In this document: positions 6,455 through 58,164 of the stretch, piece by piece
Position numbering within the stretch: the stretch's first letter is position 1
Layout: each line of letters begins with the position of its first letter
NCBI RefSeq assembly: GCF_021028975.2
Contig: NC_059437.1
Location: forward strand, 32,240,001-32,304,000
From: Sphaerodactylus townsendi
Taxonomy: Eukaryota
DNA length: 64,000 nucleotides
Direction of reading: 5' to 3'
Notes under the pieces: generated by a model
The model's database searches: none
The model's input: only the letters and a program-made list of their open reading frames with translations
Told to the model about the DNA's origin: nothing
Translations under genes and position numbers: made by a program

Positions 6455-28763
<22,309 letters not shown>

Positions 28764-33511: not shown

Positions 33512-36500
33512 TGGGTTTATAGACCGCCCTCCCCCGGAGGGCTCAGGGCGGTGTACAGTACAGATAGAGCACAATCAATTTAAAATACAATAAATAAGAA
33601 TTAAGATGGCTCTAATAAAAATAAACCCTACCCCATTAAAATGCAGCTTATAAAATTAATATTAATGTTAGCTCAAGATGGCGCCTGCTATCAATTCCCT
33701 CTCAGACATACATCAGAAAAGAAGGGCGGTAGGGGCCACATGATGTTACAGCAGCAAACAAAGGGAGGAAGGGGCCCCTATCAATGGCTAGTCTCCCCAA
33801 AGGCCCGGTGGAACAGTTCGGTCTTGCGTATATATGAGGTTTTAGTATATGAGGTTATGAAGAAAAAAATATAAATGGCCAGTCAAAGGCCAGAAGGTAC
33901 AAGGTGAGATGTAACCAGGTAACATTCAAATGTGATTGAGAGAAATACATTCTCATTCTGAATTTTATGGTCAAACATCAATGAAGGGCGCTACCTCTAT
34001 AGAAAGGCTCTTCTGCTGTGGTTATCCGAGTCGAACAAAACAAAGAAAACTATAAAAATACTAAAGGAAAAAGTTAAAAAACAGCAGCTGTGTTTTTTTT
34101 TCTGGCAGGATTGCCTGAAAATGTGAATATTTGAGGGAAGTTTCATCCTGAACTACCTGACCATATATACCCCCCTCAGCCCTGAGTATTTCTATTATGC
34201 TTAAGTGCCATTGAACACGAAGTCCCTTTTGAGTTGATTTAGAATCTTTCTGACATACGTAGCAGTTAAATGGGACACTTCCACATTACTGTCTGGTGTT
34301 TTAATGGTATGTGGAGTTGCAGTACTTTACTGTTCTGGAAAAAGAGACAGCAAATTAAATATAGCACTGTATTAACTACAACTAGTTTGCACAAAACACT
34401 TGGGGTGCCTTGAATAGAAGTTTGAGTTGTATCCATCTCCCTCATTTTCTTGAAATAGGAGGTACGTGGATGAAGGTCTTATTGGATCAGGCTTGGTGGG
34501 AAGAGTTAAGTCACCCCCCCCCACACACACACACTGTTTTCCAGAAACATCCCTGGGGACCTGCTGTTTGCCCCATTACAGCAAAAAATACTTGTACTCC
34601 TGTTAGTGACTAGTACTCCTATTAGTGTCTTTCCTTTGTCTGTTGATCCTTTTCTTGTAATGTGTGCAGGTGTCCATACGAGCACTAGGGTTTGAACCCA
34701 CAAAAGAAGAGCTCAAGAGAATAGTAGTCGAAGTGGATAAAGAAGGAACTGGGCAAATTGGCTTTGATGCCTTTTATTCTGTGATGACTCAGAAAATGGT
34801 ATATCTGTAAATTCAACACTTGTCTATAGTTAGAAATTTTCTTCTTTAAGAGTCTTGTGGTAACACGGGGACTGTTGGACATACTGTGGCTGATAGCTTA
34901 ATGGCTTAGCAATGCCCCCTTTGCTGATGGGTGCATACATTGGGGGGGGGGGGGATCAGAGCAAGGATGAAGCAAAGGCTTTCATGGCCAGAATCACTGG
35001 GGGTTGTGGGTTTTCCAGGCTGCATGGCCATGTTCTTGTAGCATTTTTCTCCTGATGTTTCGTCTGCAACTGTGGCTGGCATCTTCAGAGGATCTGATGG
35101 TAGTAAATGGTTCTTTCTCCCACCCTGGACATTCCACAGGTATATATACTCCACTTGCTTTACTACCATCAGATCCACTGTGTAGCAAAGCCTTTCAATG
35201 TAAAGGAAACAGCAGCAGCTGAGCACCAGTAATTCTTGTGTTTAGTCTTTGAGCTTGAGAGGTGCAGAAAGATCATAGAATTTGGAGATTTTGGTGTGAG
35301 TCTTTGTCCTCCATTTCTATCTTCAGTCACAGATTGATCCCAAAGAAGAAATCCTAAAAGCCTTCAAGCTATTTGAGGACAGTGAGAGTGGCAAAATCTC
35401 TTTCAAGAACCTCAAGCAGATTGCCAGTGAGATAGGAGAAAAACTGACAGACGAAGAGTTGCAGGTGAGTGTGGCGGTGCTGTCTTGCTTTGATGGCTGG
35501 AAACTGGCTTTTATCCTTCAGGCATGAGAGCTGCAGTTCCGTCTCTAATTAAATAGAGGGAAGGGCTCTTCCTGTGTCATCTCCCCACCTCACTCTTCAC
35601 ATTTTCTTGGTGCAAAGTGTGTTTGTGTCTGTGTGTGCATGAGTAGCATGGAACCACTTGGCCATGTGTCTTCTTCCCCAAAAGGGTTGAATTAGCTGAT
35701 TGCTGTGTTTGTCAAAGGGGGAAGAGCAAGATGAGGAAAGGGGTCCTTCTCTTGCCTGATGGAGGAACCCCAGAATTCTTCACACAGTGGGAAGGCTTAG
35801 GCTGTTTGCCAAGCAGTAAACCTTGTCCAGGGTCACCAGCTTGTTCTATAAGAGGAGCTATTTCTGAGTATTGAAAACCATCCTATTAGTCCCACCTCTA
35901 CCCAGCAGGTTACCAAGTTTTGTTCTGTCCAAGAGACAGAATGTGGATTAGGAAGAACTCCAGAAACGAAGCCATCAGCTAAGCAGCACAGAAGAAAATC
36001 CCGTGAAATGAAAGTTTATTTTCCCAGGCCTTTTAGGGGATGTACAAGCGGTTCTGCAGCAACTGGTGAAACTACCTGTAGATCATGAGCTACCCGTTGG
36101 ACCCTGTTGTTCTGCATTTGTATGAAAGTGGGTTTATTGTTTCAGAAGGCCAGTCTGTGCGGTTAACTTCTGAATGGCTTGAGGAACTGAGGATGGCTTT
36201 GAGCACTCCTCTAAAGTACATAAACCTATCAGGAATCACGTGGGAAGGGGAGGAAAGAGTGTCTCCTTCAGCCCTCTTGTTGACCAGCTGCAGGAGCACT
36301 GCTGCTTTTTTTGGCTGTCAGGGGTGGGGTGGGGAGAATGTGGGATATCTGCAGTATTCTATAAGGGGCNNNNNNNNNNNNNNNNNNNNNNNNNNNNNNN
36401 NNNNNNNNNNNNNNNNNNNNNNNNNNNNNNNNNNNNNNNNNNNNNNNNNNNNNNNNNNNNNNNNNNNNNNNNNNNNNNNNNNNNNNNNNNNNNNNNNNNN

Positions 36501-36798
36501 NNNNNNNNNNNNNNNNNNNNNNNNNNNNNNNNNNNNNNNNNNNNNNNNNNNNNNNNNNNNNNNNNNNNNNNNCCAATCAATTGATCAGTCGATCAATCAA
36601 ATCTAATCTGTCTATCCCTGTCTGTATATAAACTTATATACGCACACACCCCTGCTACTGTTATGCTCTCTGTGAGCAATGCTGCAGTCTGACTCCTTTT
36701 CTGCCCTGCAGGAAATGATTGATGAAGCTGATGTGGACGGAGATGGGGTGGTGAATGAGCAGGAGTTTCTGAAGATACTGAAGAAAGTTGGCAGTTAA
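33062..36798 (+). CDS. Divergent centrin/caltractin paralogue (CETN2-like exon structure): 33062-33220, 34670-34798, 35327-35464, 36712-36798; start probably ATG at 33095 or in an unseen upstream exon
   Basis: ...[32 protein letters not shown] / [32 protein letters not shown]...MTQKM / [16 protein letters not shown]...[25 protein letters not shown] / [28 protein letters not shown]; four EF-hand positions; all introns phase 0; first donor is AAG|GCAAGT. Confidence 0.9.
33449..33508. repeat. (TTA)n microsatellite, tail of a minus-strand LINE fragment extending to about 33826
   Basis: About 20 TTA units followed by GGGTTTATAGACCGCCCTCCCCCGGAGGGCTCAGGGCGG. Confidence 0.85.
36370..36572. other. 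Assembly gap
   Basis: Run of N. Confidence 1.
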
Positions 36799-38039: not shown

Positions 38040-38436
38040 TCAAGCAAGCTTTAGCACTTCTTTGACCATCTTTCCAACGCCGTCGTAGATGGTGTGGATA
38101 GGTGCATTGCACATGAAAGCACTCGTGGTCACCAGTTTGTTCTTTACGTCCACGTGGACCTCGTCAACATTTTTGTTCACGTGTTTGCAGCCCAGCTCCT
38201 TCAGGCCTTCAGCAGTCTTGGCATAAGGCCACCTGTGGAGGCAGAAGTGAGAAGGCAGTGAGTGTTTTCAGGGTCAGGCTCTCTTACGGAAAATTTGGAC
38301 AGGGCTGAGGGAAGGGGGTGATTTTTCCTCTAGGGTTTTCAGGACACTGTGTAGGCTAGACTTGTATCTGGGGAAAAAAACTATGCTGCTGAGATGAATG
38401 TGGATGGAACCAGTTCTGGCAAAGAACTTGATGGCC

Positions 38437-38517
<81 letters not shown>

Positions 38518-41500
38518 AATCCCTAATTACTAAAACCAAATAACAGTAATATTAATATCACAAATTTTACACAGTCCCCAAAAATACATCCCAGAGGGGA
38601 TAAATGTAGGTGGAAAGAAAAGAGGGAAGCCTGAGGGTAGCAGCCGTAGCTCCCTCAACCTTATGCTTGGTGGATCAGCTCTGTCTTACAAGCCCTGAAA
38701 AATGGCATCAAGTCTTGCAGGCTGTGCGTCTCTCTAGGCAGAGCATTTTACCAGGTTGAGGCCAGGGCTGAAAAGGGTGTTTTCATTTGCAGAACACAAT
38801 GTTCTTTGGGGGATGTACTGGGTGAGAGGGTCCCAGACAGCTTTAGAAAATTCATTCAGGGAGGATTGTGTTGGACCAGTTCTGCTTGCATGCATTTCTC
38901 TCCCCCTTTCCTTACTTTGCATAATTCTGCATATACCACCTATAGCTGTACTGGTTGCTGTAACATTGTCCTTGGACTGGCACCTCCCACCATCATAATC
39001 CCTTCTCTAACTAGAGAGTTCACCACCAGGCACTGTCTTTGCAGCTCAAATGGCTAGAACTTTGCTTTCCAAATCAAGACTCAGAATGCAAGGATATTCT
39101 GCTGGATATTGAAATAGAGCCACCCACCATCCCCCACCTTCAGCCAGTGGCACTTACTTCTCACATTCTGCGTCATGCCCAACGGTGACCTCACAGCCTG
39201 GGATAATTTTAGCTGCCAGCACAGGGGAAATGCAGCACAGACCTATGGGTTTCTTGGCTGAGTGGAAGGCCTTGATGGTATCTTCCACAGGTTTTGAGAC
39301 TTTACAGTTCTTTCCATCCACCGCCCAAGAACAAAGGTTTTTAGCCACTCCAAAACCACCTGGGAAGAGGAAACAGGATTCAAACAAGATGCTAGTCAGG
39401 TAGATAATGTGTCACATTATGAAGAGAACATGAAAGCCCAGGAGGACTCGGTTCCGTCTGCTCAGTTCTGAAGCTCTTGAGCAGGGCCGATTGCCATACA
39501 GGAGACAAGGTTTAAACATGTTGCTCCTCCTACCTGGGATGATGAGGGCATCTAGTTCCTTCACTTTCAGAGTGGCCAGATCTTTGACGTTGCCTCTGGC
39601 GATCCTGGCACTCTCCACCAAGACATTACGTTTCTCTTCGGTTGGCTCCCCTTTGATGTGGTTCACCACGTGCATTTGGTCGATGTCTGGAGCATAGAGC
39701 TCTGCCTAGAAAAATACCACTGTATTGATCTTGACATTCTCCCTCAGTAAACAGGGTTGGTGAACAGGCTATTCCTGTCACCTTATTTTTGTTCAGAGGC
39801 TCTGCAAACTTTTCATAACTGCAGAACAGGCAGGAAACAGTCGAAAAAGCTTTTTCCAGCTTGGAGCTGCAATGATGGGCAAAATGGCAGCTTCTGCCTG
39901 CTAAAGGCATAGATGTTTGTCCATGAATTGTACATGTGAGGAAGATGGTTATTTCTTTCAAAGTTTTCAGGAAGCTGTGGGTGAAGTGGGGGGATTCTGC
40001 AAAGGAATTGGCAGCTTTCCTGGTCCAAGAAGTAAGCATTCCCTTTGACTGTGCAAGAGTGCTTGGTCTACACCAGGGGTCTGCAACCTGCCGCTCTCCA
40101 GATGTTCATGGACTACAATTCCCATCAGCCCTTGCCAGCATGGCCAATGTTGGAGGGGGTCGGAGGACAGCGAGGGAGGGCCTTCGGAGGCCAACTTAGA
40201 GGCTGGACAGCGGTGATGAGGAGTGAGTGGGGAAGAGACGGGGACAACAAAGCATTCAGCCCGGTGCCTTTTCGCTTACCAGCGCCGCCCGGGAGGAGAT
40301 CGCTGTATTCCAAAAACCTCCCTCCTGGAGGTTTTTGAAGCTGACTGAGGCACGCCCTGGAGAGCCAGGTTGGGCAGCTGCTGCCCAGTTTTGCTTGGCA
40401 GCGCTGCCTGTACGAACGGCTCCCTGGGGACTCAAGGCATTTTTGCTGTCCCCAAGGCGTCGTTATTGGCCCGTGCGGAAAGGGCCTAAGTGGTAATGGA
40501 AGGGTAAACCTCTTCTCCTTTCCCTACTTGGCCAAAATGTGAATCCAGGAAGGACAAGCCTGCAGTTTACACCTTGTTTGATGCAGAAGAAGAGGAGGAG
40601 TTTGGATTTATACCTCACCTTTCTCTTTTGTAAGGAAACTCAAGGTGGCTTAAAAACCCCTTTCCCTTCATCTTCCCACAACAGACACCTAGTGAGGTAG
40701 GTGGGGCTGAGAGAGTTCCGAAGAACTATGACTTCCCAAGGTCACCCAGCAGGAATGTAGGAGTGTGGAAACACATCTGGTTCACCAGATAAGCCTGTGC
40801 CACTCAGGTGGAGGGGTGCGGAATCAAACCTGGTTCTCCAGATTAGAATCCACCTGCTCTTAACCATTACACCACACTGGCCTAGTCCTAATTTGTTTAA
40901 TCCCTTACCTGGTTCTAGGAACCGTGATACTGCCCTCTTCCACAAGAGGGACCCCAAGAATTAAACAAAAGTGGTTTGAAAAACCCGAACAGTCTGAATC
41001 TTCACAGAAAAATTGAGGGAGGGTGGCAAGGGTAAGAAATGAATTTGACATGCAGCAAGCTTGAAGCTTTTTAGCCGTAACAGATGAAAACTGACATGCA
41101 GCACAATTCTATGTAAGCTTATTCACTGGTAACCTCTGCTGACCTGACCTGTGAACATCTCTTGCCTTGAAAACTCTACTGGGTTGCCATAGGTTAGCTG
41201 TATCTTGACCTCACTACACACAGACACACAAAACCTCTGCTCTTCTCAGGTAACTGCTGCTGCTTTGGAGACAGGGGATTTCTTCTTAGAAGTGCTAACC
41301 AACTTGGCAACACCAGGAACCCCTCACCCATTACAACTGTAGACTAGGTTTAACAAAACCAGGGAATGGGCTATCTTTCTCTTTTGCATTTCCTGGCCCC
41401 TTGACCTGCTGTTTTCCCCTCCATTCCTTCTACAAATTGCATACTGAGGATTCAGTCACAAGACTCCTGTTTAAGTTTTACTGGAACAGACCAATGTGGC

Positions 41501-42901
41501 CATCCCACTGGAATTACTGATGATTTTGATGAGTAAACACGTTCAGATTTATGAAGGAAGAAGGATCTATCAATGGCTGTTATCTGTAACAGCTGAAAAA
41601 ATTGTCCATAGACAAAGGCTATAATATCTTTGACTCCCAACTGCCAAGGACCAATCACAAGGGCTTGTACTCCCTCTCACATCTTACATGTGGGCTCCCT
41701 GAAGCATCTGGCTGATCTTGGAAACAGAATGGACCGGTGTCTGATCCAGTAAGGCAGCCTTTTATGTCCATGTGAGAGGCCAGGCTTTTTCACAAGTGAG
41801 GCTTAAACTGGATTTTGTTACTTCAGTCAAAAACCTACGCTGGCCCAAATGTCCATGTCATCTTCAACTGCTTTCCTATTGACTCCTATCCCTACCAGCA
41901 TGATGTTCATGAAAGTTCCTAAACCCAGTCTGTCTTAACATTGCTTGAGACCACGCCATCCCAGCAGCACATAGCAATTGGGCCAGGCAGCCTAACTCAG
42001 CTATTGACTGCAAAGAAAGTCTTTCTTTCTGTACGATCCACCTTTCTCCTCCGCCCATCCCTACACAGGGGTTTAGATTACTAAAACAGAAACAGGGCAA
42101 ATCTATCTTTCCTCTTCACAAAGAATGCATCACACCATTACATAATCTAGGTTTTTTCATTGTTGTTGAATCTTCCCCAACCCAGAAAAAAGCACAGGAA
42201 GTCTGATTGGGTGCACCATATCTGAGTGTGCAAGTCCACAGCTTGCCCAACTGTCCTGCAGTGCTGTCAATCAACTGGGTGCAGAAAAATTGCCCACAAA
42301 GAGGTCATGTTTAAAGGAAATTCTCCCCCTATTTTATTTAACCTGCACCTCCCAAGAAGGAGCAGAAAAGGCCATGCTTGGGTAACAGGCCATGGCAAAA
42401 GAGATCAGGGCAGACTCTCTCAATTAAAGCTGAATATCTGCTTTACCCTCTCCACTCCTTGCTTTAGCAATACTTCACAGGACAACAGATAAAAAGTTTG
42501 CTCAGCTAAAGAAACGGCACATATGAATAGGCTGTCTGAACAGAATGCCCGGCAAGATTTCTTCTGCTAGGGAAAAGAGCTGGGTTGAGGGGCACCCTGA
42601 CAGGAAAGCAGATCATGGAAATGTTCCCAGCAAAACGAGAAAGCCTTTGAAACAATTGGCATTGGTCTAGCAGCTGAGGAAAGAATGACGATCTCATTAG
42701 AATGAACAGCACATCTAGATTTTCAACCAACTTTGCATTCTCGTAAGTTAGAAGCAGAAAAGCTTGGCCCCCACAGTGCAAGGGTTGTCTTACCTGGGCC
42801 CCATCCCTGCTGAGATGCACCATGACAGCTGACGCCTCGTGGACTTCGCTACCATCATACACCCCGCAACCAGAGAGGACAACAGCAACTTTCTTGCCCA
42901 T
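38040..42901 (-). CDS. GATD3/ES1/ElbB-like protein (DJ-1/PfpI superfamily), 224 aa, exons 42901-42794, 39705-39534, 39359-39158, 38232-38040
   Basis: [36 protein letters not shown]...[12 protein letters not shown]...[15 protein letters not shown]...[10 protein letters not shown]...[14 protein letters not shown]...[11 protein letters not shown]; 675-nt open frame; Kozak ACCATGG; TATAAA at 42980-42975; AATAAA (minus) at 37572-37567. Confidence 0.93.
38438..38517. repeat. (CAT)n microsatellite
   Basis: About 26 perfect units. Confidence 0.95.
40586..40880 (-). mobile_element. tRNA-derived squamate SINE (Sauria-like)
   Basis: Reverse complement of the 46004 element; A/B boxes at the 40880 end, (TCT)n-type tail at the 40586 end. 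Confidence 0.75.
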
Positions 42902-46284: not shown

Positions 46285-47929
46285 ATGGGGAACAGAGGGT
46301 CTGCAGAGGGCTGCAGCTGCTACCCCAGAATCAGCGCAGGAGGAAGCAAAGAAGACCTCCTGTTGCCATTTGACACCCTTTGGCCTTGTAAAATAATCCT
46401 TTGTTTATTTTATTAAAATCCTCATCCTGGTTCTTATATCCTATCCTGGATCTCTGGGACAGCAAATGGCAATTTCAAAATGATGAAAGTAGTGGCTTGT
46501 TTGGATGTCACTTCCGACTGCTGATGATCATGGATGTGGAACGGATACTTGGTTCTGTTTTGGCCAGGGCTTGTTTTTCTGACTCCAATCTATCTTGGCC
46601 GAAGTGAGTAAATTGGGAAAAAAACCCTGGCAGCTTGTCTTTTTAGCACAGCTATCAGTTCTTTGAGAGAAGGCCATAATGCCATCGGTGTTAAAGCGAG
46701 CTGTAGTGAGGCATCTTTTGAAAAAGATTTCTCATGAACATGCCCTCCACCAAGATTGGTAAAAGGTAGACTTGAGTCAGATCTCCCACTCTTAGTCCAT
46801 TCTTAGTCAAATTATCCAAATAACTTCAAGATCAGATGCCCCCAACCTTGTTAAACCTATGGACATATTTGGAGTTTTGAGAAAGGGTAATGGAGACCAT
46901 TGCAAAATGGCTGCCAAAAAAGGGGGCAATTAGCCAAGCATCCTCCTACGATTGGGGGAACCGTTTCCCAATTTAATTTGTTCAGTCATAAATTGTCCCC
47001 AAGATTATAACAAAAAATAAATTAAATAAAAATAATAAATTAGGGTTAGGGTTAAAGCAAGGGCAGCGACTCAGGCTTGCCTTAGTGTTACGTTGAGTTC
47101 TGGGGCGCAGTCCGATAATAGGGCTATGGTCAGTTTTAGGTTTCGGGTTTTTGTTACAATTTTGGGAACAATTTATGAAGCAAACCAAACCCGTGCGTAT
47201 TGACCTCCATTTTTGAAGTGGGGAATCAACCTTAGTCACCTTGAGATCCTTCACATTTACCTACGGAGCTGCCTTGTGCTCTCAAGACAGTCATCTGTCA
47301 TGGTCGAGCCTACTCTGGCTGGCAGTGACTGTCCAAGAGCGCACTCTCACATCAGCTACTACTTGATCCTTTGAACTGGAGTTCTCCTGGAGTAGACCTG
47401 GGAGCTTTGGCAATGCCAGATTGGCATACTTGGGCCTGGACACCTCTGGCTTGGACCACTGTAGCGTACTTTCCATGGGGCTGTCCTTGAAGATAAAGGC
47501 AAACTTGAAAGAAGTTTGGAAACAGCCCCATTGCTGGTGTTCGGCAGGGAGAGTGGACTCATCTAGAGTGTCACTGAGAGTGTCAACATTTGTTTTTACC
47601 TTCCGTTGATAATTGAGTTCATGCTTGCAGCAGCGAATGAGTTTTTGCAAAAAGTTTTAAAATACTCTTGGAGGACACTTTTTTTTTAAAAATCGCAAAA
47701 TGACCCAGAAAGTGTCCAAATAAATCAAACGTGTCCCCTGCCGGCTCAAGGAGTGCTGGAGAACCACGCCTCTCCTGTCCCACCGAGACGTCCATGTTTC
47801 TCAGATGCCGCCCCTGTTTGGTTGGGGAAGGGGTTTACTGTTAAGAGGAACAGAAAATCCGTATCGTTAACACACACACACTCACACACACACACACACC
47901 CACTGCTCAGGCAGGAACACAAGCGCGCC

Positions 47930-48105
47930 TTTTCTCTTTCGCTTGAAGGAAGGCGGGGGCGGAGAGGGGGGGGGGCAGAAAACCAGCGAGGCCGCCCGAG
48001 GTTGCAGAGACCCAGCCGGCTCGGGAGCCGCATCTGGCCGGACCGGGGAGGAGCGAGGAGGAAAGCCTATAAAGCGCTCGGGAGCGCCGCGCACAAAGCC
48101 GGGCG
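47930..48105 (+). promoter_or_regulatory. CpG-island TATA promoter of the AceTr-YrdC gene
   Basis: GC boxes (GGGGCGG), TATAAA 48068-48073, ATG 48106 in good Kozak context (GCGATGG); CpG island continues into intron 1. Confidence 0.65.
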
Positions 48106-51100
48106 ATGGCGTCGCTGCACGGGGCCGTCGGGCTCCTGGCCATCGCAGCCGGTAAGAGCAGCGGCTGCTGCCCCGACGACACACTCGCCTTCTGGCCGAG
48201 CCGGGGCGCCGGAGACTCAGCCTGGCCAGCGGCCCCAGCTCCAGGCGTCCCGGGGCCAGGGTCAGAGACCCGGCAGGAGGGAGGGCTCCCGACGCGCCTC
48301 CGCCGGCTGGAGAAAGCGGCGCAGCTCCGTCGGTTGCGCCTCTGGACCTCGCCGGGGCGCTCCTTCTGCGCTCTTCAAGCATTTGGAGTCACGTCGGAGC
48401 AGAGTTTCGTCCCCCCCAGTCCCCACCGGAGTTCCAGCCTTTTACATCCATTACTCGGCTGGCAAAAACTGTCCTTCCGCTTGCCCCCGTTTCCTCTGCA
48501 TCCAGCAGCCTTGTCGCTTGTTTTGCTGGGTGCCCCTCACTTCTCGCTTGGCTTCCAGACTCCCCCCGCCTTCCGCTGCTGCTGTTGTTGATGCTTCTCC
48601 TTCCCTTTCAAGTTTGCCTTTATATCTCGCTTGGGGCAATCGCATAAAGGCATGGCAGCTGGCAAAGGCCCGTTCCCTCTTGTCCGTTAAGGCTCCTCTC
48701 TGTCTCTCCCTTCCAGGATCTCTCTTGCTGGCCGTCCACTTCTACAGCTTCACCAGGCCGACCCCCCTGATTCCCAGCACTGCTCTTGGAGTCCTTCTGC
48801 TCATTTTGTCGCTTCTTCTGGCATACACAGGTGAGACAATGGTCGTTGCTGTCTTGGAAGGCAGCTCTGGAAGGCAGGCTGTATTTTTTCATGGAACTCT
48901 TGATGCCGGTGCATCTTTGCCAATTTAACTGCCTAGTAGTGCGTGGGGAGGGGGCAGAGCTCAGCGAGAGAGCATCTGCTTGGCATGCAGAAGGTCCCAG
49001 GTTCAATCACCGGCATCTCCAGCTGAGATGATCAGATAGTGGGTGCTGTGAAGGGCCTCTTCCTGAGATCTTGAGGGGCTCTGCTGACCAGAGCGGACAA
49101 TGTTGACCTTGATGGACCAGCAGCCAGATTCAGCGCAAAGCCTCTTGATATGTGTTGATGTGGCCCACAGATTTCAGCTCCCAACTGGGGAAGCTGGTTA
49201 CAGTCCTGTAATCACATGTGCCAGGTTACAGCAGCAGGCACAAGTTTTATTTGTTTATAACTCCCCTTTCTCTCCAGCAAGAACACAGAACACCTTAAAT
49301 TCTCCTGTCCTCCATTTAGTCCTCACAGCAACCCTATGAGGTACATTAGATTGTGCTACTGACCCAAGGTGCTGCAGAAAACCCCATAGTAGAGTGGGGA
49401 TCCAAACTGGCATCTTCTAGTCCAGGGGTCTGCAACCTGTGGCTCTCCATAGTCTACAATGCCCATCAGTCTCTGCCAGCATGCTGGCAGGGGCTGATGG
49501 GCATTGTAGTCCATGAACATCTGGAGAGCCACAGGTTGCAGACCTCTGTTCTAGTCTAACACTCTAACCAACGTACCCCACTGGCTTCAAGCCTAGTTTC
49601 CATGTGTGGTTTCCAAGTATGAAGCTTAGTCTCTTTAATTGCCTGGGGGTGTTGTTAGCTGGACCAAGAAGCAGTTTTAAAAATCTGTGGCTGAAGATTC
49701 TGTTTATGATTGAAACTTTGCAACCCTACAAGTTACAAAATGGCTGTCCTGCCCCCCTCCCCTATCAACAGGAGTGCGGAAGACCTTCCAGGATGCTTCC
49801 GTGTTTGTGTCGCTCTGCCTGACGGTTTCGGTGCTCTGGTGCGGTTATGGAGTGATCCAGATCCTGGCTGGGCAAGGAGTCCTCTCCAGCACTGCTGACC
49901 TGCGCAATGCAGCTGTTCCTGGACTGGCAGCCTTCAGTTTGGGGCTGCTTCTCATCAGCCTGGCGGGCTTTCTCCAGAAAGAGGTCCCCCTCGCCATGAT
50001 AGCGTTTGCCATTTCTCTGGCCTGCGCCCATGAAATTGCAGCCTTTTACAACGAGGCCTTCAGAACTTCTGCTGTGGCCTGCAATTATGTGATTGTCTGC
50101 TTTGTCGGGGGCTACGTTGGGTTGGGGAGGATTCTCTTTTTTCTAAGCCGTGAGAAATTTGTCCTGCCCGGCACAGACCTGGTCAAGAAAGAGGCCGGCA
50201 ACTGGCAGCACCCAGACGGCAGCACGAGCTCAAACGAGTTGGCTGCGTTTGGTTTGATCCTGAACATGCTCTCGGCCAGTGTCTTGGGCTGCAGGCTCCT
50301 GGGGGTGACTGATGACCTCTTTGTGGGGCAGGTCCCCTGGCTGTGGGCAGGAGGGATCTACCAGTTTGGGACCTCTATCTTCTTCTATCGTTCCCTGAAT
50401 GCACTGGCTGCCACTTTTTGGGGCTTCACCTCCCTCCTGAAGTTTGGGGAGGGCTATTCCTTCTTGATCTTGCTCTGGGTGCCCGAAGAGCCCATCTTTC
50501 CCATTCCATTCTCGGTGGTTTTTGCTATCCTCTTTACTGTCTTGGCCCTTTTCGTTGCCATCGAAAGCCTGGCCGATGGCGTCTACCTGCTATTCTACGT
50601 GGCCTTGTGCATTGCGCTTGCCTGCAGCCCACGAGGCTTTTTGGAAGGTGGCCCTCAGGGCGTGGCAGTGGGCATTTTTGCGGCCTCTGCTCTCCTGGCT
50701 CTTCTTCACCTTTACAATGAGAATGCGACAGTGAAAATCCCAAGGGGGAAGGGAGTGCTCAAGGATTTGCTCTCCCGCCTCCAGGTTTGCAAGCTCCAGG
50801 AGGGGAAAGACCTCCACGCCCCTTACCTGGGTTACTCCAAATATGCTGATGCCGAAGTACTGGGCTATGCCTGCAGCGTGCTGGCTTCTTTTGCCATGAC
50901 TGTGGCAGCAATGCCCAACTCCCCTCTTGCTATAATCGTCATACCTTGGGTGGTGGTTGCGGGGGGACTCTTGAAGCTTCTGTGCGGCTCCATGGCTTTC
51001 TCCCGAGGCAAAACTTTAGAGAGCTGTGCTTTTATTCTCTATGGGTTCATGTGGATTATCTGGGGCATTACCAGGTACGGGGGGCTGTACAGTGCTTCGC

Positions 51101-54100
51101 GGGGGTTCCAGGTAGCTGTGGGTATTGTCTCGCTCATGCTTTTCAATGCCTTCCTCATCCTTTGCACTCTCTTCCTGAGCATCTCCTGGTTCATCTACTC
51201 GCTCACCTTTGAGCTCATACTCATCAGCTTCTTGTTGGATGCGGTTGGTGCTACCTCCGCTGGCTATGACATTGCTGTCACCATCATTTTCGGCTTGGTC
51301 AGCTTCTACTGTTTCCTGACTGCCCTGGTCAACGGCACTTTTGAGAGGCCTCAACTCCCCATAGGACGACCCATTGTGAGGCTCAGTGGCTTCGGGGGAG
51401 GAAGCAGCAAGTGCCTTCACCTGCCAGCCAGGAAAGCGTCGTCAGTCAAGCAAGTCGCAGGTGAGGAAACAGTCCAGCCAGTAGGGCTATTTTTTTGCCC
51501 TTAGGCAGAATTTTGGTCATCTACCTTTGTTAAAATTCCTTCCAAAAATTCCTTCCACACGCCTTATACTGAGTCAGGCTCTAACACTGCAATCCCTGGG
51601 AGGAGGGTGGGAGGAAGGGCTGTGAAACCGACGTGACTCTGGTGTCATTGCCAGCCCATATGGCATAAGTGGCACTAATGCTACTGCAGGGGTCACTTCC
51701 ACTAATGCCAGGGAGCCACTCAGCTCTGTGTTGCTGAGTGCCATTGCACTGCTGCTGCACCGGTATTCCTTTGTTGCTGGAGCAGGTGCCAGCACCGATG
51801 GCTTCATTCTCGGGGGCAGAGCCAGCTTTAGTTGGCTTCCTGAGGTGTATCAGCCTGGGAATGCCCCCTTGTACTGGCATCAACTTATACCATCTAAAAG
51901 TGTGACACAGCCCACTGGGGAGTTTCAAGGGAGCTGGGAATATTTCCCCCTTTTCTCACATCCCACACTGCTGAAAACCTCTTTGGAGAGGGTGAAACTG
52001 TGCCATCCCCAGCCACTGCAAAACTATCTCCCCGCTGTGAATTGGACTGTTAGTCTGTCCAGCTCAGTACTGTCTACTCTGAGTGACAGCAGAACTGCAG
52101 GCTTTCAGGTGGAGGGTCTTTCACACTATTTACTAACTGATCCCTTTAACTGTGCGATCTGCCTTGAGTCTCACAGAGAAAGGTGGACTATAAATAATGT
52201 AAATAAATAAAATCTGTAAAAAGTTGTGATGTTGGGGAAATCAAACCTGGGACCTTTGGCATGCAACACTGATGTTGTACTGCTGGCCCCAACTCCCGTC
52301 TCATCCCGTCTCATCTGATGCTGTGCCCACAGGCCTGTTCACCAGATTGCACAGAGAGCTCCTGTTTCGTCAGCAGAGTTGGATTTCTGTTCTGATTTTG
52401 GACACTTAGATCTATTTTGCCACCTCAGACAAAATTACCCCATTATATACACAACTTACATGAGCTCAGTTGTCTGTTGCTACTAGTCCTTCCACGAATA
52501 AGCTAAACAGCGGCTGCCTAGTTTATAATGTACTAATGGACTGAAAGAGTCAAGGCATACTGCACTCCCTGTTCTGTGAGTCTGTGGCCTGGCATTGTTA
52601 ATTGAGGAGCTCATCCTTTGATTGTAGAGATAATGAAGAAAGGGGGCATCTGCGGGATCCCCACGGACACGGTATATGTGCTTTCAGCAGCCTGCAATCA
52701 ACCTGAAGCTGTGGAGAAGGCTTACAAGTAAGGGGTTAACTCTCCATCCAGAATTTCTCTGGAGATCTAATGCATGCACGGGGCGGCAGGGTGGGGCATC
52801 ATGTTTCTTGGGTCTCGTGGTCATGGGCAGAAACCTTTGCAACATACCTTCTCTCTGCAGCTGCCACACTCCCACACAGAATCTCTTCCAGAAGCTCACT
52901 GATAGTCTCCCTTTGGTTATCATGTAGCCAGATCTCATCCCTTTGAACATGCTTAGTTCACAAGTGTTTGTATGTGCATCCACATAGCTACTCGCCATGG
53001 GATCGGAGTAACCCGCCACAACTTCACACATAGTTCCTGTTTCTCATTCACATGGCACCATCCAGGACAATATTTTCATTAGCAGTCCTGGAAGTGACAT
53101 AGGGGATATTTTTGGTTCCAGGAGGAGAGAGAGTGGATTGTGTTGCTGTGGTTGCCATGATCAAGGAGTGTGGCAACTTCCAAGGTTTGGCTGAGGTCCT
53201 TGATTCAAATTTGCCTATTGATAGACTTATTGAACCTCTTGGTTCTCTCTCTCTCCCTAGCACAAAGCAGCAGGCTCAGGACCGTCCCATGTCCCTCTGG
53301 ATTTCAAGTTTGAAACAACTGGAACCAGCCAAGCATCTATTCAACCCTGTCCTCTGGGATTTCATGGATGCTGCATGGCCATCGCCTATCAGCCTGGTCA
53401 TTCCCAGGGGTGAGAGACTCTCCTCATTGCTGTCCTGATTTCTCTTTAACCCTTCCCTGTTTTGTTTTTTTGTTTTGCATCCCACTTCTCTGAGTGAATA
53501 GAATAGAATCTTTATTGGCCAAGTGTGATTGGACACACAAGGAATTTGTCTCCGGTGCATATGCTCTCAGTGTACATAAAAGAAAAATACATTTGTCAAG
53601 AATCATAAGGTACAACACTTAATGATTGTCATATAGGTCTAGTAAGCAATCAGGAAACAATCATTAGTAACGAAACCATAAAATGTAAAATCATAAAATA
53701 AAATGAAATAAAATGTAATGTAATGTAATGTCAGCACAGGCTATAGTCATACAGTCATAAGCGGGAGGAGATGGGTAATAAGAATGATGAAAAAAAGTAG
53801 TGCAGTAATTATATAATAAATATATAATAAATAGTTTAACATTATCGAGGAAATTATTTGTTTAACAGAGTGATGGCATTCGGGAAAAAACTGTTCTTAT
53901 GTCTAGTTGTCTTGGTGTGCAGTGCTCTGTAGCGACGTTTAGAGGGTAAGAGTTGAAACAGTTTATGACCAGGATGCGAGGGGTCAGTAAATATTTTCCG
54001 CAGCCCTTTTGACCTGTGCAGTATACAGGTCCTCAATGGAAGGCAGGTTAGCAGCAATTGTTTTTTCTGCAGTTCTGATTATTCTCTGAAGTCTGTGTCG

Positions 54101-57100
54101 ATCTTGTTGGGTTGCAGAACCAAACCACACAGTTATAGAGGTGCAGATGTCAGACTCAATGATTCCTCTGTAGAACTGTATCAGCAGCTCCTTGGGCAGT
54201 TTGAGCTTCCTGAGTTGGCGCAGAAAGAACATTCTTTGTTGTGCTTTTTTGATGACATTTTTGATGTTAGGTGACCATTTTAGGTCATGAGATATGATGG
54301 AACCTAGAAATTTAAAGGTCTCTACTGTTGATACTGTGTTGTCTAGTATTGTGAGAGGAGGTAGGATGGGAGGGTTTCTCCTGAAATCTACCACCATTTC
54401 TACGGTTTTAAGTGTGTTCAGTTCTAGATTGTTCCAGTGGCACCACGAGGCTAGTTGTTCAACCTCCCGTCTGTATGCGGTTTCATCGTTGTCTCGAATG
54501 AGACCAATCACTGTTGTATCATCTGCAAACTTCAGTATTTTAACAGATGGATCGTTTGAGATGCAGTCATTGGTATACAGAGAGAAGAGAAGTGGTGAAA
54601 GTACACAGCCTTGGGGGCCCCCTGTGCTCATATTACAAGTGTCTGATGTAATTTTTCCTAGCCTCACCTGCTGTTTCCTATCTGTTAGGAAGCTTGCGAT
54701 CCACTTACAAATATGCTCAGGTACTGCTAGCTGATTTAGTTTGGTTAGAAGAATGTCCGGTATGATAGTATTGAATGCTGAACTAAAGTCAACAAAGAGG
54801 ACCCTTGCATAGGTCTTTGGCGATTCAAGATGCTGTAGAATATAGCGCAAAGCCATATTAACAGCATCATCTGTCGATCTATTTGCTCGGTATGCAAATT
54901 GCAAGGGGTCCAACAGTGGATCCGTGATGGTTTTCAAATGATACATCACTAGCCTTTCAAAAGTTTTCATAACTACAGATGTTAGAGCAACTGGTCTGTA
55001 GTCGTTCAGTTCCTTGATGGAAGGCTTCTTTGGCACTGGGACGATAGTGGAGTGTTTGAAGCAGGAAGGAACATAGCACATCTCTAGTGATTTGTTGAAG
55101 ATTTGGGTGAAGATGGGGGCCAATTGGACAGCACAGACTTTTAAGCAAGAAGGTGTTATCTTGTCTGGGCCTGGTGCTTTTCCAGGCTTCTGTCTGTGAA
55201 ATAGATCTTGCACTTCCTTTTCTGAGATCACCAGGGGTTGTAAACCCAATGAAATGGGTGCAGTTGTAGGAAGTTTGGCTATTGTTGGTGCATCTGAAAT
55301 AGAGGTTGTGGAGAAAGGTGACTGTAGATTATTTTCAAACCTGTGGTGCTCCACTTAAGTGGTGCTTAAGTGGTGCTTAAGTGGTGCTCCACTTAAGGGC
55401 CGTTGCTGTCATTTTCTCTTCAGGATGGGAGAGTTTTCATGCTGATTAACTCTTTTTCTTTCCAATGTAGGTGAATGGGTGGACTACCTGGGCATGAAAG
55501 ACTCTGCTAAATATGTTGGTACCCCTCAGAGCGTAGCTATTCGCATCCCAGATTGCTCAGTCACTACCCATCTGATTGATTTGGTGAGCTGAATCTAGAA
55601 CCTCTTCAGTATGTCTGCCTCTGTGTTTGTGAAAGACCATGGAAAGATTGGTGAGCAATCCAGGAATGTATTCTGTACCACTCACCTCTTAAATAGCATA
55701 TAGGTGAAATCTGTAAGGTTTGCAGATTTGAATTCTACTTCAATGTTTTTTTCTGCACCAGACTTCTCAGTTCTAGAGAAGTGTGAGCTTGGTTTATTTT
55801 CAAAAAAGTCTCCTCATAAGGATAGGAAGCTTTTTAAAAAGAATGTGATTTTTATTTAATCTGACTTCCATGACAGAGCCAATACACAGGGAATTGTCTC
55901 ATTCTAGGATTTGCTCTGTTATGACAGGAAAAGCTACCCTCTGTAGATCCAGCCTCGTGCATGCAATTCTTTTTGATCTTATGAATAGCCGCATTCTCTC
56001 ACTTTCTTTCTCGGTCTTTAGGTTGGCCCAATTACTGTCACATCTGCCAATCCTACAGGAGAAGCAGACACTACTCACCACAACCAGGTGTATGCCAAGC
56101 TGGGAAACAAGGTAAATTCTATGCAAATGCTTGCTCTTTTGGCAGTCCCTCTTGGAACTTTAGGGTACCAGTGCTTAAGTTCAGTGTACTTTGGGGAACT
56201 TTGGGGGAGTCAAATGTCTAGAACAGGAGTCTCCAATGTGATGCTTGTGGGTGCCATGGCTCGAACCAACACCTTTCCTGGGCCCTGCTGCCTAGTGTTT
56301 CTAGAAAGTGGATGGATCAAATGTCTTTTTTTCCCCAGCAGGGTATCTGACTGGCTGTTAGAAAGCTTATTGGCTGTGCAGGGTTTTTTTTAAAAAAATA
56401 GTACTTTGGCAGCAGCTATCTTCAAAGCACAAGAACCGTAAACAATATTTTATTTTTAGAAGGCATCCTGTTAAATGGAGTTTCTGCCTGCAGTGCTAAA
56501 AGTTACAGAATTATATGTGACCTTACTCTGGCTCCTATGGCAGCCATTTTGTGCTTGCATCTACCACCCTGTGACACACTTCTAAAAGTGCCTGCAGGCT
56601 CAGAAAGGTTGGAAGGCCTTGTTCTAGAAAGACCCAAAATATAAGTGCTGCTGATTTGCTCAGAATAAGAGCCTTTTATTTCACTGGATCCATTCACTAC
56701 AGTTGTGCGCAGGACAGGAGTGGAAACATCTGAGCCTTTTCAGTTTACCTACCTTCTTTCCCTATGAAAAGAAGAGTGGTCCTTTCCGCACAGCCAAAAT
56801 GAAATGTCCTGCAGACATTTTAAAAAGATCTGTTTTGGCTCTCTATGCTGAGCCATGGATCTTCCACCAGTTTAGTCTGGCTTGAACTCAGAATACCAGA
56901 GCACCATGAAGGCAGGATGTATTTCTTGTATAAATTGCCAGAACATGTCTGGACAGAGCTTCTTCTCTCCACTAAAAAAAATCTGAGACACAGTGACGAT
57001 TCTTCTCTAGGTGGATGCTGTTCTTTGTGATGGACCTTCTCCGGAGAACATAGCCTCCACAGTGGTGGATTGCACCAAGATTGAGAGTGGGAACATTGGG

Positions 57101-58164
57101 TTCTTTAGAGTCGGTCTTGTCCCCAAATCCCAGGTCAGCATTGTCTCATCGATCCTTCTCTTGTACAATCATCTTGATGTGTTAATTCAGCCACATTTAT
57201 TGTTTAAAATTATGTATTGTAAAGTACAGTGCAATGTGTATAAAACGTTTGCAAGCCTGATAAAAGTTCTACACAAAGATCGTAGGAGGGGAACCTCTGG
57301 GCACTTAAGCAAAAATGTAAACATGTTGGCACTCCAATATATCTGCCATCCAGGGGCACAGAAAGTGTTGTCCTTCTTTTTTAAATAACTTTGAACCTAC
57401 CTTCTTCCAAACAGCTTAGAGCAGCACGCATAATTCCTTTCCATTTTGTCTCACAACATCCCTGTGAGGGAGGTTAGAAAAAAATGACTGGCCCAAAGTC
57501 ACCCAGGTAGTTTCAGTAGGAATTTGAAATCAGGACTCAGTGTGGCATACTGAGGACTACACACTAAGCACTGGATTTCTGGAAGGACAAACTCATATTT
57601 TTTCTCGCAATCATACATGTAAACTTTGCTGAGAACAGTCTCACTTGCTAATGCAACACCCCTTTGCAGTCTACAGAGCTTGCCATCTGCACTTGCAGCT
57701 CACTGTCCGACAGCATTGCTTTGCCCAGGATTCTAGAAAACGAAGCATTTTATAGGGCTTCAGTTCTACTGATGACTTTTGCAGTCAGAGTCAGAGTGTG
57801 GCCCTGTGCAGCCTGTGCATGCATCAGAGCAGCAGGTGTGCCTTGAGAGACCCGGAGCTCTTGAAAACGGACACCGGGCTTCATTCAGAGGAGATTAAAC
57901 TAGGAAGGGAGTCCCTAGATCCACCGAACATCCATTGAATCTTGCATTCTTTGTCTCTGTTTTCAGGTATTACAGATTCTGGAGCAGGTCCAAAAAAGAC
58001 ACCAGTCAGGCCACATCAACAGCACCCTGGCTCTGGAGGGCAAGGAAGAGCAGCATACCCTGTTAAAAGCCTCCCTCATCAATGGTGCTCATGTTCAGAG
58101 GAAGTCACCAACATCGTATACTAACAGTGCATTTTGTGTTGATGAGAGAGATGAACCTCAGTGA
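48106..58164 (+). CDS. Uncharacterised 873-aa polytopic membrane protein: three SatP/YaaH/Gpr1/Fun34-like repeats plus C-terminal Sua5/YrdC-like domain; exons 48106-48151, 48717-48830, 49772-51460, 52628-52727, 53261-53409, 55471-55583, 56022-56111, 57011-57133, 57967-58164
   Basis: Nine GT-AG exons give a 2622-nt open frame. Membrane part: YADAEVLGY...AGGLLKLLCGSMAFSRGKTLESCAFILYGFMW...[21 protein letters not shown] aligns by eye with E. coli SatP. YrdC part: GGICGIPTDTVY, AWPSPISLVI, AIRIPD, TSANPTG, STVVDC, FFRVG. TATAAA at 48068-48073; AATAAA cluster 59188-59254. Confidence 0.88.
48951..49160 (+). mobile_element. tRNA-derived SINE (Squam3-like); further minus-strand copies at about 32690-32880, 47280-47420, 52060-52280
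   Basis: AGCTCAGCGAGAGAGCATCTGCTTGGCATGCAGAAGGTCCCAGGTTCAATC tRNA-like head followed by a body shared among the copies. Confidence 0.7.
49423..49548. mobile_element. Palindromic hAT-type MITE (family of 259 element)
   Basis: TSD TTCTAGTC on both sides; CAGGGGTCTGCAACCTG...CAGGTTGCAGACCTCTG. A half copy lies at about 40074-40145. Confidence 0.8.
53496..55342 (-). mobile_element. 5'-truncated Rex1/Babar-type LINE (RT domain) in intron 5 of the AceTr-YrdC gene
   Basis: ORF 55354-53984: KAPGPD, NDYRPVALTS, QFAYRANRSTDDA, FVDFSSAFNTI, PQGCVLSPLLF, KFADD; one frameshift near 54000 continuing to ...SFFPNAITLLNK*; 3' AATAAA and (TTCTA)n tail at 53496-53515. Confidence 0.88.

Follow-up and report, generated by a model that had tools for sequence, protein, structure and literature searches.

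The 64,000-nucleotide stretch of the gecko Sphaerodactylus townsendi genome that we analysed (CM037626.2, about positions 32,240,001–32,304,000; hereafter the window) contains a gene, LOC125442380, whose product is listed as an 'uncharacterized protein' of 873 amino acids (P0001). This protein almost certainly consists of 18 transmembrane helices, forming three tandem six-helix units of the SatP/AceTr type, followed by a short linker and a YrdC domain of the Sua5/TsaC type, and belongs to the vertebrate ATO family. The architecture has already been published in silico: Ghasemi et al. described 'vertebrate ATOs' of ~900 amino acids, in which three six-helix Gpr1/Fun34/YaaH domains in tandem precede a Sua5/YciO/YrdC domain at the C-terminus (bioRxiv 10.1101/2025.05.26.656167; iScience 2026;29:116467, PMC13316224), a family that includes the gecko gene. 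An earlier note on this DNA, made from the sequence alone, had given prior characterisation of an orthologue with this architecture as a ground for refutation, and the published description supplies this in silico. The best overall explanation of the protein, to which we assign a probability of roughly 0.55, is that it would act as a channel for a succinate-like dicarboxylate and carry a cytosolic YrdC-like domain that binds ATP or a ligand.

A search with the long open exon at 49816–51444 retrieved P0001 with 100% identity over the exon, and exact mapping of this database protein onto the window placed the gene on the + strand, in nine exons at 48106–58164 (Table 1). The spliced coding sequence is 2622 nt long and ends in TGA, its phases are consistent, and the translation of the exons equals P0001 exactly. 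All eight introns are GT–AG with pyrimidine tracts, and the open frame of exon 3 runs for 596 codons without a stop. The mapping reproduced the start, end, exon number and length of the intact, phase-consistent gene described in the earlier note, and all of the YrdC motifs quoted there are present in the protein (PTDTVY, residues 628–633; WPSPISLV, 689–696; IRIPD, 723–727; TSAN, 744–747; STVVD, 783–787). More than 100 intact orthologues of the gecko protein occur across vertebrates, with identities of 63–86% over a range that extends from geckos to sturgeon and platypus.

Assignment of the membrane part to the AceTr family rests on profile searches, profile–profile comparison and structure prediction. 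Exon 3 scored 24.8 bits (E = 1.9e-5) against PF01184 (Gpr1_Fun34_YaaH), matching profile positions 16–192 of 207 but staying just below the cut-off of 25 bits; this cut-off is passed by the orthologue P0050 (26.3 bits) and by P0158 (28.3 bits), a protein of the sister clade B described below. A phmmer search with exon 3 against 1.84 billion representative proteins returned 55 relatives, among them single-unit AceTr proteins of ~200–240 amino acids (PF01184 E-values of 1e-16 to 1e-48), all of which aligned to the last third of the exon. When slices of the family alignment (44 or 108 sequences) were compared by hhalign with an AceTr alignment that included E. coli SatP, unit 3 was recognised with a probability of 99.5% (E = 1e-22), unit 2 with 97.8% (E = 1e-12) and unit 1 with 96.4% (E = 1e-9), and all three alignments were in register over 172–183 columns. 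The depth of the family alignment mattered for this result: with close orthologues alone, only unit 3 was recognised, units 1 and 2 reaching 2% and 29%, respectively. The units also matched one another by profile, with probabilities of 98% for units 2 and 3 and 95% for units 1 and 2.

An AlphaFold model built from the 108-sequence alignment (mean predicted local distance difference test score [pLDDT] of 80.5, predicted template modelling score of 0.73) contains 18 long helices, arranged as 6+6+6, followed by an alpha/beta domain; an earlier model from 22 close orthologues had a pLDDT of 43 and was discarded. Unit 1, which is the unit least recognisable by sequence, superposed on SatP with a VIA Z of 19.2–19.4, at 2.5–2.6 Å root-mean-square deviation over 179–180 of 181–182 residues. 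Foldseek comparison of the membrane part with SatP gave a template modelling score of 0.72, normalised to SatP, and the C-terminal domain was matched to Sua5/TsaC2. The SatP/AceTr-type repeats proposed in the earlier note are confirmed by the profile–profile comparison and by superposition on SatP, with the number of repeats now counted as three. Profile–profile alignment also recovered both of the peptide similarities that the note had reported between the ends of a unit and E. coli SatP. A protein-atlas search with residues 1–400 gave PF01184 clusters at 0.86, which we treat as a lead and not as evidence.

SatP/YaaH is a succinate-acetate channel of the AceTr family (PF01184). The SatP proteins of E. 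coli and Citrobacter koseri (PDB 5ZUG, 5YS3) have the same six-helix unit fold as the gecko protein, and the stretches GG..Q/K, (Y/F)(K/R)xG(N/K)T, YG.(F/M)W and the C-terminal F..P.LP.G are conserved between them. They differ in that SatP is built from 188-residue protomers, whereas the gecko protein carries three units per chain, and in that the gecko units are fused to an enzyme-like domain.

The C-terminal domain is of the Sua5/YrdC type. The full protein matched PF01300 (Sua5_yciO_yrdC) with an E-value of 3e-34 (118.5 bits, residues 617–793), and exons 4, 5 and 7 each matched this family separately. In the model, residues 600–816 superposed on Sua5/TsaC2 with Z of 24–25, at 2.1–2.4 Å root-mean-square deviation over ~203 residues, in agreement with the Sua5/YrdC-like domain recognised in the earlier note. 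The Sua5/TsaC2 structures that share this fold (P. abyssi 6F87, S. tokodaii 3AJE and T. maritima 9DSQ) are 23–28% identical to the gecko domain. Unlike them, the gecko protein has neither a SUA5 domain nor the linker lid, its domain is attached to a membrane part of 18 helices, and it carries the stretch GE(A/P)D(T/S)THH after the SxN motif. In full, this family-specific stretch reads SANP(T/S)GE(A/P)D(T/S)THH and is common to both clades of the family. The YrdC-like domain is the best-conserved part of the protein, with 60–65% identity between gecko and molluscs, compared to 15–39% for the membrane units. E. coli YciO (1K7J/1KK9), a YrdC-fold paralogue of TsaC outside the pathway of the tRNA modification threonylcarbamoyladenosine (t6A), also matched the domain well in structure (Z of 22; template modelling score of 0.81, normalised to YciO); it differs in being a soluble single-domain bacterial protein with weak sequence similarity to the family (E = 0.02 with the family profile). 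YciO is regarded as inactive in t6A synthesis.

We next consider the active site, which was mapped from the functions assigned to residues in the P. abyssi Sua5 structures (PMC6004061) and from a hidden Markov model alignment of the family profile to that protein. The equivalents of Sua5 Lys56 (K652), Ser143 and Asn145 (S745 and N747), Gly148 (G750), Thr35 (T631), Arg121 (R724), Ser181 (S783) and the bicarbonate ligand Arg195 (R800) are kept, and Ser147 is conservatively changed to T749. By contrast, Arg58, the arginine of the KxR motif, is replaced by Q654, Asn62 by R658, and the threonine ligand His67 by W663. The KxR/SxN tetrad is consequently incomplete in the gecko protein, which has K652-Q-Q654 together with S745-A-N747, while four of the five ligands of L-threonine and bicarbonate (T35, H67, R121, S181 and R195 in P. 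abyssi Sua5) are retained, the exception being H67. Tryptophan at the W663 position is near-invariant in the listed members of clade A, the clade to which the gecko gene belongs; the exception is a frog paralogue that has phenylalanine (P0127, Pyxicephalus adspersus, locus L012; 814 amino acids, 32–41% identical to the gecko protein). The KxR arginine is essential for the handling of ATP and PPi in TsaC/Sua5 (PMC6004061), and the KxR/SxN tetrad is a published criterion for a functional enzyme (PMC10321239). Replacement of the KxR arginine and the threonine-binding histidine by Q654 and W663 makes synthesis of threonylcarbamoyl-AMP unlikely, and we consider that the domain is probably not a threonylcarbamoyl-AMP synthase. 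With the NCBI curated models, the protein scored 114.8 bits against TIGR00057, for which the equivalog cut-off is 123.2, 42.9 bits against TsaC type 1 (NF007919; cut-off 175) and 23.9 bits against AceTr_1 (NF038013; cut-off 50). By these models, the gecko protein is related to both parent families without being an equivalog of either.

The change at the KxR arginine divides the family. We compared 108 members, 42 from clade A and 66 from clade B. All 42 clade-A proteins have Q, L, H or K at the position of the KxR arginine, and Trp is the residue of this clade at the histidine position, P0127 excepted; the clade includes the gecko gene and genes of other reptiles, birds, amphibians, platypus, coelacanth, sturgeon, gar, scallop, snail, argonaut and chiton. 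By contrast, all 66 clade-B proteins retain the KxR arginine and have Cys or Thr at the histidine position; this clade includes si:ch211-153b23.3 of teleosts and genes of sharks, chimaera, bowfin, gar, sturgeon and the scallop Argopecten. In a maximum-likelihood tree of 39 members, the split between the clades had 100% support in the Shimodaira–Hasegawa-like approximate likelihood-ratio test, and the gecko protein grouped with Gekko and other squamates in clade A. Because the fish clade represented by si:ch211-153b23.3 keeps KxR, it is a paralogue and not an orthologue of the gecko gene. The zebrafish si:ch211-153b23.x genes, which the earlier note had named as being of the same kind, accordingly belong to the paralogous clade B on both the tree and the active-site split.

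The two clades appear to be old. Molluscs lie outside all vertebrates in both clades of the tree, on long branches. The A and B genes are arranged head-to-head, ~0.5 kb apart, in the scallops Ylistrum balloti (L005) and Argopecten irradians (L011), lie on the same stretch in sturgeon, and are about 80 kb apart in gar; we found no clade-B remnant downstream of the gecko gene in the window (58–64 kb). In the YrdC part, the two clades have introns at the same positions. These observations fit a tandem duplication before the protostome–deuterostome split followed by many losses, with the caveats that the branches are long and the invertebrate sequences few. Ghasemi et al. also recognised two vertebrate clades, 'except mammals', and read the few protostome sequences in their survey as possible horizontal transfer (PMC13316224). 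A recent transfer from vertebrates to protostomes is unlikely, since the protostome members branch outside the vertebrates in both clades, and vertical descent fits the mollusc fusions better than transfer does. The published survey found no mammalian member, in line with the absence of a human counterpart that the earlier note had claimed; the only mammalian member we found is an intact clade-A gene in platypus (P0110, 878 amino acids), so that the absence is at most therian, not mammalian.

What the membrane part might carry was approached through the pore. Landmarks of AceTr proteins are the signature NPAPLGL(M/S) and, in SatP, a constriction formed by F17, Y72 and L131 (PMC8379382). At the constriction positions, in that order, unit 3 has S422, Y477, and F533 or I536, unit 2 has N218, T273 and L332, and unit 1 has I13, V72 and I134, the assignments for units 1 and 2 being tentative. 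Clade-B proteins have N in units 1 and 3, and D in unit 2, where SatP has the constriction phenylalanine. In yeast Ato1, shrinking F98 or L219 allows succinate to be carried (PMC8379382), which makes a small or polar residue at the phenylalanine position consistent with a wider pore. We judge the odds that the protein is a small-carboxylate channel to be about even.

We propose the following mechanism. AceTr units have both termini in the cytoplasm, which would place the YrdC-like domain at the cytosolic face of the membrane. Two chains might close a six-unit ring by analogy with the SatP homohexamer, as Ghasemi et al. have also hypothesised (PMC13316224). Each unit, or at least unit 3 as the best preserved, would form a pore for a small organic anion, and Ser or Asn in place of the constriction phenylalanine could make that pore wide enough for a dicarboxylate. 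The YrdC-like domain, which keeps the ATP ligands K652 and S745/N747 and the carboxylate/carbamate ligands T631, R724, S783 and R800, would bind ATP and a succinate-like dicarboxylate at the mouth of the channel, and would then either adenylate the ligand or gate the pore as a sensor. The earlier note had suggested a channel-enzyme ('chanzyme') in which small-anion flux would be coupled to an adenylating or ATP-sensing domain, a mechanism that is conjectural. Sua5 and TsaC adenylate N-carboxy-L-threonine, in which two carboxyls stand two atoms apart, as they do in a 2-substituted succinate.

A candidate for the dicarboxylate comes from the genes found next to the family. In the gecko, the AceTr-YrdC gene is divergent from an ElbB-like gene, with start codons 5.2 kb apart. 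The exons of the ElbB-like gene cover positions 2–217 of NF008747 ('isoprenoid biosynthesis glyoxalase ElbB') with a summed score of about 256 bits, above the cut-off of 180. The same head-to-head pair of an ElbB-like and a clade-A gene is present in goose, platypus, gar and sturgeon, an arrangement maintained across bony vertebrates. The clade-B gene, for its part, is head-to-head with an MmgE_PrpD gene encoding 474–498 amino acids in sturgeon, catfish and gar. We take this neighbour to be a putative IRG1L, the itaconate synthase paralogue, on the strength of its Pfam families, its length and the IRG1L synteny reported in a preprint. In Ylistrum, a PF00903 (glyoxalase/VOC) gene adjoins the A/B pair. 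According to that preprint, VOC, YrdC, 2OG-Fe(II) oxygenase and GAT genes are syntenic to oyster pIRG1 and to vertebrate IRG1L, pIRG1/IRG1 occurs only in lophotrochozoans and deuterostomes, and IRG1L was lost in therian mammals (10.1101/2022.06.17.496652). The distribution of pIRG1/IRG1, with loss of IRG1L in therians, is the phyletic pattern that we see for the AceTr-YrdC family.

Expression data from zebrafish are consistent with this association. Expression of irg1l and of si:ch211-153b23.3/.4/.5 is co-induced by Shigella infection (PMC6980646), these genes are joint hub genes of one module in a weighted gene co-expression network analysis (PMC11140123), and they correlate with irg1l at r = 0.86–0.90 across 18 conditions (PMC8877790). 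We found no functional link between irg1l and YrdC in the literature searched. The association with IRG1L, through neighbourhood, phyletic pattern and co-expression of the sister clade in zebrafish, makes itaconate the leading candidate. Itaconate is 2-methylenesuccinate. That itaconate or a related C4–C5 dicarboxylate made by IRG1L is the physiological ligand, and that the family is linked to itaconate metabolism, is a tentative proposal that we consider unlikely on balance, and the likelihood is lower for the gecko clade-A gene than for the family. A broader version, which we find slightly less probable again, is that the AceTr-YrdC protein, with its three AceTr units, is a channel for itaconate or a close dicarboxylate and the missing transport and activation component of an ancient metazoan IRG1L/pIRG1 cluster (the cis-aconitate decarboxylase with VOC, 2OG-Fe(II) oxygenase and ElbB-like/GAT genes), and that this module, including the family of the gecko gene, was lost together with IRG1L in therians. 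A domain derived from an enzyme that adenylates N-carboxy-threonine, the aza-analogue of a 2-substituted succinate, would in this case now bind or adenylate a dicarboxylate at the mouth of the pore. No paper in the literature searched connects AceTr-YrdC proteins with the IRG1L cluster, and Ghasemi et al. make no mention of itaconate, IRG1 or synteny (PMC13316224). Taken together, the pairing with the ElbB-like gene, that of clade B with IRG1L, the common phyletic pattern and the co-induction in infected zebrafish provide a testable idea, namely that the family moves or activates an itaconate-like dicarboxylate in non-mammalian innate immunity. If true, an immunometabolite would gain a class of transporters, and the YrdC fold a chemistry not previously ascribed to it.

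Several observations weigh against a dicarboxylate channel with a ligand-binding domain, or against its connection to itaconate. As regards family membership, the full protein scored 23.6 bits against PF01184 (E = 4.4e-5, residues 410–574), below the cut-off of 25, and its score against AceTr_1 is less than half of the cut-off. As regards the pore, alignment to AceTr located the signature NPAPLGL(M/S) in none of the three gecko units; the aligned stretches are D413-A-E-V-L-G-Y in unit 3 (ADAEVLGY), E209-L-A-A-F-G-L in unit 2 and A7-V-G-L-L-A in unit 1. Moreover, Y477 of unit 3 is the sole retained residue of the F-L-Y constriction, and residues of units 1 and 2 were mapped using alignments with 11–17% identity. 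With the signature absent and only Y477 kept, the permeant could be something other than a carboxylate. Prediction of a complex between residues 1–592 and a second copy of unit 1 scored 0.00, which speaks neither for nor against closure of a ring. The frog paralogue P0127 still matches PF01300 (2e-11), yet all 12 of the active-site positions checked in it are changed; retention of the domain without its active-site residues suggests that its role is structural or regulatory and not catalytic. With respect to itaconate, searches of the window, and of the 10 kb around the clade-A genes of goose, platypus, gar, sturgeon and scallop, turned up no IRG1L exons. The expression data all concern zebrafish clade-B paralogues, not clade A, and in the table that gives the correlations with irg1l, sult5a1, an unrelated gene, shows just as strong a correlation (PMC8877790).

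The main rival explanation, which we regard as unlikely although it deserves serious consideration, is that the YrdC-like domain is a regulatory sensor of a ligand or nucleotide, or a structural plug of the channel, and performs no chemistry on the permeant. The presence of Q, L, H or K in place of the KxR arginine throughout clade A is what this explanation would lead one to expect, as are the frog protein, in which the domain persists although every catalytic position differs, and the TIGR00057 score below the equivalog cut-off. However, 10 of 12 Sua5 active-site positions are kept or conservatively changed in the gecko protein and are near-invariant from molluscs to birds, and the sister clade B has KxR intact. 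Furthermore, Asn62 is replaced by the near-invariant R658, four residues from the lost arginine, which could compensate for it.

A channel for ammonia/ammonium, urea or bicarbonate/carbamate, coupled to adenylation of carbamate in the manner of HypF and TobZ (giving carbamoyl-AMP), is an improbable alternative. HypF and the O-carbamoyltransferases TobZ, VtdB and GdmN have the same fold as the gecko domain within multidomain proteins, and adenylate a small carboxyl or carbamoyl compound; their YrdC-like domains match at Z of 10–18. Support for this alternative also comes from the yeast AceTr members named Ato for ammonia export (PMC8379382), from the resemblance of the membrane fold to the H. 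pylori urea channel UreI (Z of 14.7), from the polar residues at the constriction phenylalanine position (N218, S422), and from retention of the bicarbonate ligand Arg195 as R800. By contrast, the match to Sua5-type proteins is far better than that to HypF and TobZ (Z of 25 versus 10–18; 25–28% versus 12–17% identity), and the Kae1-like transferase domain that accompanies the fold in HypF, TobZ, VtdB and GdmN is absent from the gecko protein. The likeness to UreI is a known fold-level resemblance of SatP, and neither the neighbourhood nor the expression data point to nitrogen metabolism.

We consider it slightly less probable again that the protein is an ordinary threonylcarbamoyl-AMP synthase for t6A in tRNA that happens to be anchored in the membrane. 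Many bird and reptile orthologues carry automatic names such as 'SUA5 synthase', 'YRDC protein' and 'Threonylcarbamoyl-AMP synthase' (for example P0017, P0038 and P0011), the last of these also as the automatic UniProt name of many orthologues; since the KxR arginine is missing in clade A, such names are probably misleading. The strong similarity to PF01300 and TIGR00057, a fold that best matches Sua5/TsaC2, and the retention of SxN and of the equivalents of T35, R121, S181 and R195 are in keeping with such an activity. Against it stand the KxR tetrad, incomplete by the published criterion (PMC10321239), the replacement of the threonine ligand His67 by W663, and the score below the equivalog cut-off. 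The gene is also absent from therians and most invertebrates, while t6A is universal, and vertebrates have a separate canonical YRDC gene.

Finally, although the NCBI model of the gecko gene is a prediction, an artefact, in which separate membrane and YrdC genes were wrongly joined or a pseudogene is decaying, is hardly credible given a stop-free architecture of 870–890 amino acids in more than 100 species from both clades, molluscs included, intron positions of the YrdC part common to both clades, canonical splice sites and fitting phases throughout, and full-length clade-B proteins encoded on run-assembled contigs of ~2.8–3.5 kb (P0220, P0247, P0268, P0272, P0287 and P0306), which, being far below the family gene lengths of 3.9–7 kb, are most likely spliced transcripts.

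Ghasemi et al. modelled one example, Oryzias melastigma A0A3B3D9A3, and stated that the function of the fusion is unknown (PMC13316224). Beyond their account, our analysis makes modest additions: the clade-specific change at the KxR arginine, the deep history of the two clades with mollusc fusions in both, the monotreme copy, and the ElbB-like and IRG1L neighbourhood. The gecko locus adds one well-documented member, with exact exon coordinates, to a family that is widespread in vertebrates, absent from therian mammals, and the sole animal representative of a channel family of microbes.

Table 1. Exons and membrane units of the gecko AceTr-YrdC gene, its ElbB-like neighbour, and clade-B loci of other species. 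Positions are those of the window unless a locus is named.
Feature	Position	Strand	Residues and content
Exon 1	48106–48151	+	aa 1–16; contains the start codon and the first part of helix 1 (channel unit 1)
Exon 2	48717–48830	+	aa 16–54; helices 1–2 of unit 1 (model helices 2–28, 36–60)
Exon 3	49772–51460	+	aa 54–617, 1689 nt; rest of unit 1, units 2 and 3, linker into YrdC-like domain
Unit 1, end	to about 50181	+	to about aa 190; inside exon 3
Unit 2	about 50224–50751	+	about aa 205–380; inside exon 3
Unit 3	about 50827–51375	+	about aa 406–588; inside exon 3
Exon 4	52628–52727	+	aa 617–650; start of YrdC-like domain, PTDTVY (T631 = Sua5 Thr35); PF01300 28.6 bits alone
Exon 5	53261–53409	+	aa 650–700; K652-x-Q654, R658, W663, WPSPISLV; PF01300 19.5 bits
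Exon 6	55471–55583	+	aa 700–737; IRIPD with R724 (= Sua5 Arg121)
Exon 7	56022–56111	+	aa 738–767; S745-A-N747 (SxN), family-specific PTGEADTTHH; PF01300 14.7 bits
Exon 8	57011–57133	+	aa 768–808; STVVD (S783 = Sua5 Ser181), FFR (R800 = Arg195)
Exon 9	57967–58164	+	aa 809–873 and TGA; last YrdC-like helix (to about aa 825), then variable tail
ElbB-like gene	38043–42901	-	four exons, 224 aa, DJ-1/PfpI superfamily, no presequence
Clade-B/MmgE_PrpD locus, sturgeon	L008 4874–8085		
Clade-B/MmgE_PrpD locus, catfish	L009 5441–8872		
Clade-B/MmgE_PrpD locus, gar	L010 1–2774		

The variable tail at the C-terminus (residues 826–873, nt 58018–58161) is poorly conserved and predicted to be disordered (pLDDT <50). 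At the other end of the gene, a TATAAA lies at 48069–48074, ~40 nt 5' of exon 1, within a G+C-rich stretch (G+C of 0.57 across 48–50 kb of the window), and a (CA)n run at about 47870–47900 lies just 5' of this G+C-rich promoter region. Intron 5 contains a retrotransposon reverse transcriptase frame of 456 codons on the - strand, antisense to the gene (53984–55354), which matched RVT_1 (1.4e-33) and gave an ALKBH8_N-type match. The frog locus of P0127 has no called neighbours within 10 kb. A trinucleotide run at about 38390–38500, within the span of the ElbB-like gene, reads as poly-Met/poly-Asp on the - strand. The window has runs of N at 16330–16516 and 36370–36572, and TPR-repeat exons of an upstream neighbour are present at 19486–19926 on the + strand.

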